A stretch of DNA of 62,960 bases, the filler included, from Pelomyxa schiedti (taxonomy: Eukaryota > Protista > Evosea), in assembly GCA_020536535.1 (NCBI GenBank). It is 6 parts of 6 records of this genome, joined end to end, with 100 filler letters (N's around TTAATTAATTAA, not from the genome) between each part and the next. Parts side by side here need not be neighbours in the genome. Positions count along the whole stretch, not along the records: positions 1 to 25,660 come from JAHLWZ010000674.1; 5 more parts are not named here. One strand, 5' to 3'. The notes under the pieces are model-generated. The model was not told the DNA's origin and ran no database searches. It saw nothing but the letters and a program-made list of their open reading frames with translations. Of this stretch, positions 17,559 through 22,486 are shown one piece after another (positions within the stretch are counted from its first letter, which is position 1; each line of letters opens with the position of its first letter). Position numbers and translations under genes: made by a program.

Positions 17559-18920
17559 TCAAATACTATTTTCTTTCATTGGTTCACACTGAAACCCCTC
17601 TTCCCCAGTTCTACACAAGTAGGTTAATGATGTTCCTTGGAGTGCCTCTTTCTTTGTGTGTGTGGCGTGAATGGCAAGTGTTTGACCAAGGGAGCCAACC
17701 ACCGGGTTGAGTTCAAATTTGTTTTTGAACTTGTCTCTCCACACATTCTCCCCCGTGATAGGTTTTTTATCATCTCTGGGTTTGATTTTGAAAGGGTGAC
17801 TTGTGCAAATGACTGCGGCTCCAAAGTCCTTGGCAGCCCTCTCCAATGCCTTTACTGTAGCAGTAATCCTGTTTGTTGGATCAGCCTCCGAGCAGTTCTG
17901 TGCGTAAAATGACGATATAGGGTCCACAACTATCAACCTCACTTGTGAAACTGCCTCGCCTCCATCGGCTTCGTTTGCAGAATCATTTGAGCAACAGGAG
18001 AATGCCGCCGGGCAGTCAGCCAAAGTCTGAACCGAGGCCAGTAGCTGCAACGAAGACCAGCACCTTACAAATTTTATCCTGGACATCACCCTAACAGCCT
18101 CCCGCGCCACCATTTCCTCCTCCCACTGTGCATAATCCACTTCGGCACTAGCTCCCATTCCAGCATCATTCCCGCCATATCCATTTGCATTTGCGCTTTC
18201 AGTTCCACCGGGATTCCCATTTGCGTTCGCATTTGCAGTTGCAGTTGCAGTTGCAGTTGCAGTTGCATCTGAATTTTGATTTGTTGCGCTTGCAGATATG
18301 CTGTCGTGTGACTCCAATGGCTGGGAGGCCGTGGCTTGCCGCGGCGTGGTCTTGCAGTAGGCCCTGAGCCGCGACCTCACGAGCGCGGCGAGCCTGTTGC
18401 CGCTCACGTGGCCGTCGCAGTCGAAGTAGACGGCGGCCGACTGGGCCCCGCCCGTGGGCACGCCGCCGAGGCACCGCGGCATGGCGCAGGTCACCGCCGC
18501 GTGCAGCGCCACCTCCGTGGTCCCGCTGGACGACGGCCCCGCCACCTCGACGAACTGCCCGGCCCGTATCCCGCCGGCGCCGCAGCCCCCGCCCCCAGAG
18601 AACCCCAGGTCCGCCACCGCCGCAGCGTCCATGTCCCTGTCCCCGCCGCTGGCCGGCCCCCCTCCCGCGCCGCCGGGTCGCCGCGGCGCCGAGAGGGGCG
18701 GGAGCTCCTGGTCCAGGAACGCGATGTCGGTGAGGAGCCCGGTCCCCTGCAGCCGCTCGAAGAGTGACCACGCCGTCTCGCCCTTGGGCCCCGCCGCAGC
18801 ACGAGGCGGAGGAGGAGGTGGCGGCAGTGGGAGAGGCCTCGCGGCGGCCGGGACTGTTGTGGTTGTTGTAGTCGCCGCTGCATCACGCAGCTGGGCGTCG
18901 TTGGACGCGTCCACCATCAT
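17559..18920 (-). CDS. XRCC2: XRCC2-like RAD51 paralogue, single exon
   Basis: ETAWSLFERL N-terminal motif, FVEVAGPSSSGTT (Walker A position), CAMP..LGG..GG, VYFDCDG, RCWSSLQLL, LIVVDPISSFY. Confidence 0.85.
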   Translation of the reverse strand: MMVDASNDAQLRDAAATTTTTTVPAAARPLPLPPPPPPPRAAAGPKGETAWSLFERLQGTGLLTDIAFLDQELPPLSAPRRPGGAGGGPASGGDRDMDAAAVADLGFSGGGGCGAGGIRAGQFVEVAGPSSSGTTEVALHAAVTCAMPRCLGGVPTGGAQSAAVYFDCDGHVSGNRLAALVRSRLRAYCKTTPRQATASQPLESHDSISASATNQNSDATATATATATANANANGNPGGTESANANGYGGNDAGMGASAEVDYAQWEEEMVAREAVRVMSRIKFVRCWSSLQLLASVQTLADCPAAFSCCSNDSANEADGGEAVSQVRLIVVDPISSFYAQNCSEADPTNRITATVKALERAAKDFGAAVICTSHPFKIKPRDDKKPITGENVWRDKFKNKFELNPVVGSLGQTLAIHATHTKKEALQGTSLTYLCRTGEEGFQCEPMKENSI

Positions 18921-18960: not shown

Positions 18961-20718
18961 ATGCCCCTCTTCGCCCTCACGTACCACGTCGTGGACAACT
19001 ACGTCGAGAGGAGGCAGCCGTATCGCAACGAGCACCTGGGGCTGTGCCGCCTGTTCGAGGCCGGGGTGGTTCCCCCGGGTGAGAGAGGGGGCAGGGTGCC
19101 GACCACGATGGTTCTGGGCGGGGCGTTCGAGGACCTGTCGGACAGGCGGCGGGCGCCTGGGGCCCTGATAATATTCCGGGCGGGGGAGGCGGCGGACGTG
19201 AGGCAGTTTGTGGAGCGAGACCCTTACGTGGCGCACGGGCTCGTGGAGAGGTGGCGCGTGGCGCCCCTGGCCACGCCCCTGGTCGGTTGCCTCGTCTCGG
19301 CCGAGGACTCCGCGCCAGGGGGATCTGTTCCTAGCACTCTTAGCGACGCTGGAATTGTGGCTGAAAATGATAATGGGATTGGGATTGGGACTGGGACTGC
19401 GACTGGAATGGAGTGTATTCGTGTGGACAGAGACAGGACAAGTGCCGATTGCAGGAGAAGTGCTTGTGTTGGCGGAATTCCTTATGGTAATGAAAGTCCA
19501 CATAATGGCGCTCATGACAACAACTCACTTGAGTGAACAGAGAATGTCGACTCGGAGTTGAGGGATAAGGTCTTCTCCATGATACTGGGAGATATTTGTC
19601 AGTTCTTGTGGTTCAAGGACCTGACATCCGTGTCTCGTGTCTGCCGGGCTTGGAGGGCTATGTTTGGTGTTGGAACTCACACTGGAGAGGGCGCTGTCAC
19701 GTGGATAGCTGCACTGGTTCGGACTTCACCTTTTTTCCAAATACCACACCCCATGGTATGCGGTTCAAATATCTTTGAGCACTGCAAAACCTGCCATCTG
19801 TATAGAGAGCAGACGTGTTACAATCCAATGGAAATGCAGTGGCAGATGAAAATGATGTCGCGCCGGGATTCTATCGCTTCGTCTTCCAGAACTGCTTCTC
19901 AAGCAACTGGTACACATCGGGGGTGATCACATCAAGCACCCCACTGGCGCCCTTTCCCTCTCCGAGTTCACACCAGCTTTGCTATTACGAAGTAGAAATA
20001 AGATGTATTTCGGACTGTGCTGTGGGTATAGGATTTGGTATTGTCCCCTTTTTTTTTTCATGGCTTCTTGGTTGTTAACCCGCGAAAAGGTGTTCTAAAT
20101 GCAAACGAAGCAATGTTCAGGCACCCAGGGTGGGCATTTAAAACTAATGACAGTTATGGGTGTGTATGGGTGCTTGCCTTGGCGGTTTTGACCCCATTTC
20201 TAGGTATCATGGAGACCTTGGAAACATTTTCCACAACCACCCCACTGGAGTCTCTGGCTGGGGTCCTCTTTTCGGGCCGGGTGTGTATTAATAACACCGC
20301 AATATTATTATTTGGTTTCGTCTTACAAACAAGTTGCCAGGTGATGTGGTAGGTTGTGGCATTGACATGGCAAACAACACGATTTTCTACACCTTAAATG
20401 GCCAATTCCTTGGTGTTGCATTCCATGCACAAAGTTCCAAGCTTCTCCTTTTTGTTGCCTTGTATACGTGTGTATTCTGCTGCTTTCAAACAAAAGAAGT
20501 TGATAACAATCCATTCCAATCACTTTAGAGTGTCCGATATCGTGGCAATCAACATGGGTTTTTACAAACCGTTTCTGTACAATCTGGTTAATTATGAACG
20601 AGGTACAGAGACGAGATTTGTTTTTTTTTTTTTTTAGTTGTAATATTTCCCCCAGACTCTCAGTACCCTGTTGTTTGGACAACAGACCAGTGCACGGAAC
20701 ACAGTAAACCGTGGGTAA
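18961..20718 (+). CDS. YciI-domain / F-box / SPRY fusion protein (predicted)
   Basis: YciI: ERRQPYRNEHL...GALIIF...FVERDPYV. F-box: ILGDICQFLWFKDLTSVSRVCRAWR. SPRY: YYEVEI, HPGW..SYGYHGD, GDVVGCGID, FYTLNGQFLGVAF. The first two are joined by GT-AG intron 19487-19540. Confidence 0.72.
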
Positions 20719-20811
20719 CAAAGTCGTGACTTTTGGGATTTTTTGGAAATATTATCTTAACACAAACATCCCGTGCTTTTTTTGCAATAAAAAAAGTTTT
20801 GTTTGCCAACT

Positions 20812-22486
20812 TTATCCTTTTGGTTCTTTGTGGAAGAAATCAGTGATTTGTGTTGTTTGTGCAGGTGTTTGTCTTCTTTTTTTGGCCTGGCTTGGGTTGC
20901 TCTGTTCTGGTCCTTTTATGTTAGAAAAGTTAAGGATTTCAACACTGAATTGTTGTTGCTCTTGAGTAATGTGATATCTTTATGAAAGTGCCACCACAGG
21001 TCCTTTGGTGTTGTGAAAACCATGGGTCAGTGGGACCTGGCGGTCTGTTCATAGCTCTGTGCGAAAGTTATAAAGAAGGTCGAGATAATACATAAATTCC
21101 TTTTCACTATTCCAAAATGGGGTGGCTTCGTTCTGCAAGAACCCTGTGTGGGTCAGATTAACACTGTTAATTTGATTTATACATTGCACTGCCACCAATG
21201 GACCCGATAGTGGTCAACTTCGTCACTAAAGCTATGGTACACCGTGACGTGTGCGTTGCATGCAGCATTGACAGTCGCCATCCATGTCCTAAAATTCTAG
21301 CCCTATGAATGGTATTTTCCCAATTACTTGGACATACAGGACCATGGTCACCGTGATCTCGGTTGTTGTGGGTTACAAATACTACACGCACGTAAGAAAG
21401 AGCATGTTAAAAATAACGGCACACAGTAAGCATGTATCATCTCGTGCTACATACAGCCTCGATTTTTATCGAAGAATAATAATGTTGGAGAAATGCAAAC
21501 CAGAAGTGTATTCACAACATCAGAAGCCGGTCTGTACTTCAATAGAGGCTCGGAAAGCCGAATCTCGCATATGCCACCCTTTCTGTTATACTTGCACAAA
21601 CCTGCACATCTTTTTATGTATGAAGTCAGAGGTTGGCTTCCCGCAGCACTTGCACAAACAGAGTCATTTTTGAACTCCAAGAAACAGAAACAGCATCCAG
21701 TTTGGATCCAAATAAGCGCTGATTATAATCTACAAACAAAGCGAAGACATCTGGGTGAGGGCTGTCATCCCTAAACCAATCCGTTGGCTCACAACTCAAC
21801 GCCAGGAGTTCGTTTTGATGCTCCGTAACAACAAGTCTGCCAGCACTAGCACTAGCACTGGCACTCTCGCCCGCACAGTCGCCATTGCTATTGCTATCCA
21901 AATCACCACCTCGCTCCGCCGCCGCTGATCCTGCACTCTCAACCACATTCTGCACAGTCAATGACGGCGTGATTGGCTCACTTGCACCACTGCCGTCTTT
22001 CTCCTGGTTGGTCTGATCAGCAGGAGCAGGCTTTGGCTTGTCCTTTCCATTTCCATTTCCATTTCCATTTCCATTGCCGATGCCGCTGCTAATTCCAGTG
22101 CTATTGGCATTTACATGGACATTGGCATTGGCATTGACATTGACATTGGCCTTAACAATCCCAACGGCAGCGAAATTGACAAGAGCATCGGAATTGGAAC
22201 TGTTGCTGTCGCGAGCGACGACGAGCTTGTCCCCGCAGCGCCCCTCGCTCGCCTCCTCCTCGCCCACATCAGCAGGCTCGCCGGTCGGCATTATGGGCTC
22301 CCCCCCTCGCTCCAGAGACAGCGCGATGGCGAGCTCCAAGTCCGCGTCCAGCGACCTCAGCGGGGGCCTCTTGCGCACGACCACAGCCCCCGGGGGCGGG
22401 GCCTCGTCCCCGTTCTCTGCTGCTGCATCTGGTTGCCCTCCCCTTGGCTCACCGGCCGTGGGCGTCCTTGTTGTAGCAGTAGACAT
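20812..22486 (-). CDS. SPRTN: SPRTN/Spartan (DVC1) SprT metalloprotease with N-terminal UIM-like motif and C-terminal PIP-like motif
   Basis: PHPDVFALF, KMTLCAGLC, IRLSEPLLK, TLLHEMIHAYL (HExxH), DHGP, VYHSFSDEV, HWWQCNG, HQRTCGGTFIK|IKGPE; DADLELAIALSL; QITDFF. Confidence 0.92.
20920..20977 (-). other. 58-nt AT-AC (U12-type) intron in SPRTN
   Basis: Minus strand reads AAG|ATATCAC...TCCTTAACTTTTCTAAC|ATAAAAGGA. Removal restores CGGTFIK-IKGPE and the last exon; retention gives a stop. Confidence 0.8.

Follow-up and report, generated by a model that had tools for sequence, protein, structure and literature searches.

Which spliceosome removes the last intron of the SPRTN-like gene of Pelomyxa schiedti, and how can its deviant 5' splice site be tolerated? 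The gene lies on the minus strand of the window, by which we mean the whole stretch of DNA that was analysed (62,960 nucleotides (nt), filler included, from assembly GCA_020536535.1), within the part taken from JAHLWZ010000674.1 (positions 1 to 25,660). Its last intron, intron 7, has AT-AC ends, a branch site of the U12 type and a 5' splice site that departs from the U12 consensus at +6 to +8. In our reading, 20977-20920 is the AT-AC last intron of a SPRTN orthologue and is most likely removed by the minor (U12-dependent) spliceosome; we give this a probability of about 0.78.

RNA evidence for the removal of intron 7

Portions of the stretch are contained in four runs of one study, two of single-cell RNA-seq and two that are DNA-like. 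A contig from run X2 (253 nt, with a terminal Nextera adapter) aligns without mismatches to 20889-20916, 20975-21056, 21100-21142 and 21182-21266. Three segments are missing from this contig: the 58 nt of intron 7, 43 nt at 21057-21099 and 39 nt at 21144-21182. A first, sequence-only reading of the DNA had proposed that removal of 58 nt with AT-AC ends brings CGGTFIK next to IKGPE and opens a tail ending in QITDFF, and had named RNA across the junction as a check. The contig skips exactly 58 nt, and both the RNA and the translation bear out the proposed join.

The 58-nt junction (20917-20977) is ambiguous over 3 nt (ATA) and can be read with AT-AC, TA-CA, AT-AT or TC-TA termini. Only the AT-AC register, which corresponds to 20977-20920, yields a known terminal pair together with an ATATC start. 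This register places 31 nt of the RNA contig on exon 8. The RNA contigs show the spliced form only and none spans the unspliced form, which leaves the retained share unquantifiable.

Removal of intron 7 joins ...QRTCGGTFIK to IKGPEQSNPS... in frame and restores IKIKxPE. Retention would end the protein at ...TFIKISHYSRATTIQC (...IKISHYSRATTIQC; final residues ...TIQC), directly followed by a stop codon. Altogether, 189 GT-AG, GC-AG or AT-AC joins are possible. When these are ordered by the length of their open tail, a few of the top 25 do arrive at the QITDFF frame, but at the cost of part of the zinc-binding motif. The 58-nt AT-AC join ranks below those 25 by open-tail length; it was checked separately and matches the RNA.

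The junction might also be artificial, produced by assembly or by reverse transcription in a low-coverage single-cell library, in which case the mRNA would truly end in ...TIQC. Such an artefact would fit one contig of depth ~3.5 from one sample, with a short side of 28-31 nt and the 3-nt microhomology (ATA) at the junction. However, the same contig drops two further introns exactly where homology predicts them. The in-frame join restores IKIKxPE, and the boundaries fall on ATATC and on an AC 9 nt past the branch-site motif TCCTTAAC. As a check for template switching, the two splice-site regions were compared with each other. Their best 12-mer identity, 0.667, is well under the 0.916 that serves as the artefact flag of Larue et al.; hence, the junction is unlike a reverse-transcriptase template switch. 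Taken with these observations, an artefact is very improbable.

Splice signals of intron 7 and the minor snRNAs

The reverse complement of 20920-20977 begins with ATATCACAT and ends with TCCTTAAC and TTTTCTAAC, 58 nt in all. The perfect U12 branch site that had been read near the 3' end is indeed there: TCCTTAAC is positioned 36 nt downstream of AUAUC and ~10 nt from the 3' end, with 9 nt between it and the end of the intron and no long pyrimidine tract. It is the sole TCCTTRAC in the window (1 in 25.7 kb against 1.84 expected), a count that is not above chance. What matters is the position of TCCTTAAC and not its count. At intron-like base composition, the chance of finding TCCTTAAC within the permitted 7 places is P ~1.7e-4, and the chance of TATC at +2 to +5 is P ~6.5e-3. 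Given a generic TTAAC branch site, TCC would precede it by chance in ~1.3% of cases.

We searched the components of the minor spliceosome in the window's own assembly (52.4 Mb, 5337 contigs) with the Rfam gathering scores as cut-offs. The minor small nuclear RNAs (snRNAs) U11 (67.5 bits, cut-off 39), U12 (58.2 bits, cut-off 53) and U6atac (62.7 bits, cut-off 33; contig C841, 53279-53397) were all found with their Rfam models. In the cmscan alignments, the U11 5' end is the canonical UAAAAGGG. The U12 branch-site box is likewise the canonical GUAAGGAAAA, which pairs with UCCUUAAC leaving a bulged A and is complementary to the branch motif of intron 7. With 41.1 bits, a second U12-like locus (contig C859, 7899-8035) falls short of the cut-off. 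The 5' half of this locus is intact, with the branch-site box in it, and its 3' domain is shortened; either a variant gene or a pseudogene would fit.

U6atac: In the cmscan alignment, this RNA has GAGCCGAGAGA where the consensus reads GAAAGGAGAGA, i.e., the box GCCGA instead of AAGGA. The three changed bases are those that pair with +6 to +8. A pattern search gave a single U6atac-like locus in the genome. With GCCGA replacing AAGGA upstream of AGAGA, it belongs to the CC variant, defined as [GU]CCGA at this place, which is known from Trichoplax, cnidarians, a sponge, Acanthamoeba, Physarum, Physcomitrella and oomycetes (Davila Lopez et al. 2008; PMC2396436). This genome is a further carrier, with no difference seen. 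In the organisms with the CC variant, the 5' sites are of the consensus type and unable to pair with that U6atac box (PMC2396436). The idea of GCCGA as an organism-specific change was dropped, since the variant is known and widespread (PMC2396436).

Minor-spliceosome proteins: zf-U11-48K (PF05253), a domain that is not specific to the minor spliceosome, gave one match with 25.6 bits. Ubiquitin_4 (PF18036), which we take to be the ubiquitin-like domain of SNRNP25 (the U11/U12 25K protein), matches two adjacent exons with 34.2 bits. PDCD7 (PF16021) had no match in the genome, a result that is uninformative. As far as the search tools show, a minor spliceosome is present in this organism.

Recognition of intron 7 by this machinery can be pictured as follows. 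U12 would pair with the perfect TCCTTAAC ~10 nt from the 3' end, and the 5' site would retain only AUAUC, with nearly no U11 complementarity past +5. Recognition would then probably proceed via the cooperative U11/U12 di-snRNP (a paired small nuclear ribonucleoprotein) across the very short intron, together with protein contacts at the first intron bases. Cooperative binding of the U11/U12 di-snRNP is established in human extracts. As the CC-variant U6atac would be unable to pair with CCUU anyway, the changes at +6 to +8 would cost U11 pairing alone. Splicing would join the zinc-binding domain to a basic tail of 35 amino acids with a PIP-like motif, and retention would give a protein without this tail.

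Several observations weigh against the minor spliceosome, besides the limited RNA support given above. The deviation at the 5' site that the sequence-only reading had pointed out is real: +6 to +8 are ACA, whereas the consensus is CTT. With the U11 5' end of this genome, the 5' site of intron 7 has a predicted duplex energy of ~-0.2 kcal/mol, compared with a predicted -6.6 kcal/mol for the consensus site AUAUCCUUUU. Exon 7 ends in AG, which has been discussed as favouring the major spliceosome (PMC11347168). CTTAAC within TCCTTAAC could also be read as a generic U2 branch site, and the branch sites of the U2-type introns of SPRTN are equally near the 3' end. Odd termini are probably tolerated by the major spliceosome in the same gene, as intron 6 is GA-AG. 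Finally, the Rfam model of U4atac (RF00618) had no match in the assembly, either at its default threshold or when matches up to E<=10 were allowed, and a pattern of the expected U4atac/U6atac stem plus Sm site gave one match that cmscan did not recognise. A missing U4atac is common in protists. In Acanthamoeba and Physarum, U11, U12 and U6atac are likewise the sole minor snRNAs reported (PMC2396436). Of the minor snRNAs that had been suggested as a further check, U11, U12 and U6atac were thus found and U4atac was not.

Intron 7 could accordingly be a U2-dependent AT-AC intron, removed by the major spliceosome through the generic CTTAAC branch site, with A at +1 and the last C as a compensating pair, as known from the rare U2-type AT-AC introns in animals. 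The AG at the end of exon 7, the missing U11 complementarity past +5 and the loose terminal dinucleotides of intron 6 in the same transcript would suit this explanation. So would positions +2 to +4, which resemble the U2-type GTATGT of this gene, and CTTAAC, which fits yUnAy at the distance usual for the short U2 introns of this gene. On the other hand, ATATC combined with a full TCCTTAAC at the U12-typical distance is improbable by chance. Position +5 of intron 7 is C, whereas G occupies it in 4/5 of the U2-type introns of SPRTN. Moreover, canonical U12-type AT-AC introns and minor snRNAs exist in the genome, and U2-type AT-AC introns are very rare wherever studied. Those of animals resemble intron 7 in their AT-AC termini, in the AG at the end of the exon and in lacking U11 complementarity, but have a U2-like ATAAGT 5' site and no TCCTTAAC box. 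We regard a U2-dependent intron as quite unlikely.

Minor-type introns elsewhere in the genome

The sequence-only reading had gone one step further and proposed that the organism keeps a minor spliceosome with relaxed or altered U11/U6atac recognition. The SPRTN intron would then be a typical product of an organism-wide change. We compared intron 7 with other candidate introns of the same genome. The pattern consisted of ATATC, 15-45 nt, TCCTTAAC, 7-12 nt and AC, with the reversed pattern as the control. Genome-wide, it gave 28 matches against 21 in the control; hence, most single matches are due to chance. An open frame across the candidate junctions failed to separate introns from chance, and homology of the flanks was used instead.

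ATATCCTT is present in 8/28 matches (7/23 distinct loci), where 0.4 would be expected, i.e., it is ~20-fold enriched. One ATATCCTT...TCCTTAAC...AC intron interrupts an AAA ATPase gene, in which positions 9-27 of the Pfam AAA profile are matched before the junction and positions 31-70 after it. The enrichment and the AAA ATPase intron together indicate that the canonical AT-AC minor intron is in use. At +6, A, G or T occurs in no more matches than the reversed control predicts. No other ATATCA match resembles an intron in a recognisable gene. Among the 14 unique ATATCC matches, 6 are not followed by TT, which is about as many as the control predicts; one of these, on contig C540, simply lies inside a 294-codon open frame. 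The GT-AG version of the pattern gave 16 matches against 19 in the control, with GTATCCTT in none. Judged by these patterns, the minor introns of this genome (perfect TCCTTAAC, 37-80 nt) appear to be almost all AT-AC, unlike those of most species.

C625: A probable AT-AC intron lies in an IDI-like gene on contig C625 (39377-39432). Its 5' site is ATATCCAAC (ATATCCAA), which is non-consensus at +7 and +8, and its branch site is TTCCTTAAC. The intron lies between ...LVDENDxxxGxxxKxE and (C)HL...GILHRAFSVFLF. For the piece downstream of it, human IDI1 (E 0.03) and TIGR02150 (E 0.002) were matched; the upstream piece is recognisable by eye only. This site is a weak hint at tolerance at +7 and +8.

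The C625 intron, the 6/14 ATATCC matches without TT and the GCCGA box of U6atac in place of AAGGA are what could be cited for organism-wide relaxation. However, the U11 5' end is canonical, and the CC variant to which GCCGA belongs is already known from lineages whose 5' sites follow the consensus (PMC2396436). ATATCCTT is strongly enriched (8/28 against 0.4), and the matches with a non-C at +6 or with ATATCC lacking TT stay at the control level. Relaxed or altered recognition throughout the organism is thus unlikely. From the proposal, the minor spliceosome itself stood, with U11, U12 and U6atac above the Rfam cut-offs, and the organism-wide change in recognition was not supported.

Given the canonical U11, the known CC variant and the enriched ATATCCTT, intron 7 of SPRTN is, on present evidence, a single outlier in its own genome. 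It shares with U12-type AT-AC introns the termini, ATATC, TCCTTAAC ~10 nt from the 3' end and a genome that encodes U11, U12 and U6atac, and it is, as is usual for them, a single such intron amid U2-type neighbours. In contrast to the consensus U12-type intron, it has ACA for CTT at +6 to +8, its U11 duplex is nearly abolished, and it is only 58 nt long. Because of ACA at +6 to +8, intron 7 is 'minor-like' by strict motif criteria and not a consensus minor intron. A strong branch site, a degenerate 5' site and G at exon position -1 are also features of the 'minor-like' introns of Olthof et al. 2024 (PMC11347168). That class is defined by position-weight-matrix scores, and intron 7 is likened to it by its motif features; the members discussed there are mostly GT-AG, whereas intron 7 is AT-AC and from a protist (PMC11347168). 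The transformed minor system of Physarum polycephalum (bioRxiv 10.1101/2020.10.12.336362) is also a case of a protist with non-standard minor-intron motifs. In Physarum, however, the branch site and U12 have changed together genome-wide, while the present genome has a canonical U12 and U11 and mostly canonical AT-AC introns, and intron 7 alone is strongly deviant.

Overall, intron 7 is well supported as a fairly ordinary 'minor-like' intron that is carried by its strong branch site, although the assignment is not proven. We infer both the spliceosome that acts on it and the reason why the weak 5' site is tolerated. A more far-reaching idea would be that, in CC-variant lineages, +6 to +8 are read by U11 alone and a perfect branch site in a short intron can replace U11 pairing. 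The set of minor introns would then be drifting towards recognition by branch site and AUAUC, with the introns of SPRTN (ATATCACA) and of the IDI-like gene (ATATCCAA) as possible first examples. We put this forward as a tentative proposal that is more likely wrong than right by a wide measure, and the same doubt applies to the role of the two introns in it.

The SPRTN gene, its other introns and its neighbours

The features of the locus are compiled in Table 1. Profile and structure searches were run exon by exon, and only short junction peptides were translated for the frame check. By local phase arithmetic, the exon phases close in frame over the 8-exon model. The Pfam and PDB matches confirm the predicted minus-strand gene as a SPRTN orthologue: a SprT-like metalloprotease domain with HExxH and a zinc-binding domain downstream of it are both present.

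Table 1 Features of the SPRTN locus and its neighbours in the window
Feature	Position	Strand	Remarks
SPRTN-like gene	20812-22486	-	8 exons; coding sequence of 1347 nt, 448 amino acids; ATG 22486, TAA 20814-20812
Exon 1	22486-21660	-	SPRTN model; starts with ATG 22486
Intron 1	21610-21659	-	50 nt, GT-AG; predicted only
Exon 2	21609-21501	-	SprT-like PF10263, 28.5 bits
Intron 2	21447-21500	-	54 nt, GT-AG; predicted only
Exon 3	21446-21425	-	Contains HEMIH (HExxH)
Intron 3	21382-21424	-	43 nt, GT-AG; predicted only
Exon 4	21381-21338	-	SPRTN model
Intron 4	21297-21337	-	41 nt, GT-AG; predicted from homology only, outside RNA coverage
Exon 5	21296-21183	-	Matches human Spartan (PDB 6mdx), E 4e-9
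Intron 5	21144-21182	-	39 nt, GT-AG; skipped in RNA contig
Exon 6	21143-21100	-	SPRTN model
Intron 6	21057-21099	-	43 nt, non-canonical GA-AG (other registers GG-CA, AG-AC); skipped in RNA contig
Exon 7	20978-21056	-	Ends the Spartan zinc-binding domain (...CGGTFIK); covered by RNA contig
Intron 7	20920-20977	-	58 nt, AT-AC, phase 0; skipped in RNA contig of run X2
5' splice site ATATCACAT	20969-20977	-	+1 to +5 ATATC, as in U12 consensus RTATCCTT
Branch-site motif TCCTTAAC	20929-20936	-	Perfect U12-type; then 9 nt to terminal AC
Exon 8	20812-20919	-	35 amino acids and stop; KKRR basic patch; PIP-like TTQITDFF; RNA contig spans 20889-20916/19
F-box/SPRY gene	19558-20730	+	Convergent neighbour; F-box-like 24.4 bits, SPRY 41.1 bits
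Rad51-paralogue gene	17559-18920	-	Single exon; Rad51 and AAA_25 domains

Zinc-binding domain and C-terminal tail: Exon 7 matches SPRTN_ZBD (PF22934) with 49.1 bits over profile positions 23-48 of 48, and the match stops exactly at the exon end. The last exon translates to IKGPEQSNPSQAKKRRQTPAQTTQITDFFHKEPKG followed by a stop codon, with ...TTQITDFFHKEPKG as the C-terminal end. TTQITDFF fits the PIP pattern xxxIxxFF, without a leading Q. The animal protein has a C-terminal PIP and UBZ; a UBZ was not found in the SPRTN model. A weak UIM-like match (LELAIALSLE, 12.7 bits, below the cut-off) is located near the N-terminus, whereas the UBZ of the animal protein is C-terminal.

N-terminal region: This part of SPRTN is long and of low complexity. 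At 21840-22160 in exon 1, hexanucleotide repeats on the minus strand encode (GN)n, (NA)n and (SA)n runs. The DNA contigs are interrupted at 22029-22159, and in one of the runs 6 nt (GCACTG) are inserted at 21854. The break and the insertion suggest that the repeat length in exon 1 is polymorphic or that the repeats are hard to assemble. Among metagenome contigs, no related SPRTN loci were found. In the library that was searched, no paper mentions SPRTN together with 'minor intron'.

Intron 6: Its removal joins ...HFGIVKR to AMNRPP..., which matches ...YVKRATNREP of the human protein. A good GT donor 9 nt downstream goes unused. From this intron, the major spliceosome of the organism probably tolerates a non-T at +2. 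Intron 6 was also considered as U12-type and rejected, as its 5' end GAATTTAT and its box TTTATAAC fail to fit.

Neighbouring genes: The convergent neighbour encodes an F-box and SPRY protein. In an RNA contig of run X1, the last intron of this gene (~20603-20653) is GT-AG, and the contig reaches 20796, 16 nt from the SPRTN stop codon. Hence, the 3' ends of the two genes abut or overlap. The Rad51-paralogue gene, whose nearest Atlas clusters are XRCC2, has an N-terminus with 65% GC and low complexity. With it, a second gene of DNA repair is located two genes away from SPRTN.

What does intron 7 mean for the gene and for minor splicing? Two of the three RNA-supported SPRTN introns are non-canonical (AT-AC and GA-AG), and annotation restricted to GT-AG fails here. 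The sequence-only reading had expected such predictors to miscall the gene at intron 7, and it proved right twice over, since intron 6 is GA-AG. In a wrong model, the tail at the C-terminus with its basic patch and PIP-like motif is lost. For this DNA-protein crosslink protease, the value of intron 7 lies mainly in the annotation and in a test case of a weak 5' site combined with a strong branch site. Intron 7 is a clean natural case of AT-AC splicing in which U11 complementarity is nearly absent and the U6atac of the organism is of the CC variant. Any tolerance of degenerate 5' sites in CC-variant lineages would bear on how the substrates of the minor spliceosome are defined. If true, a drift driven by the branch site would give the CC variant, unexplained since 2008, a testable consequence.

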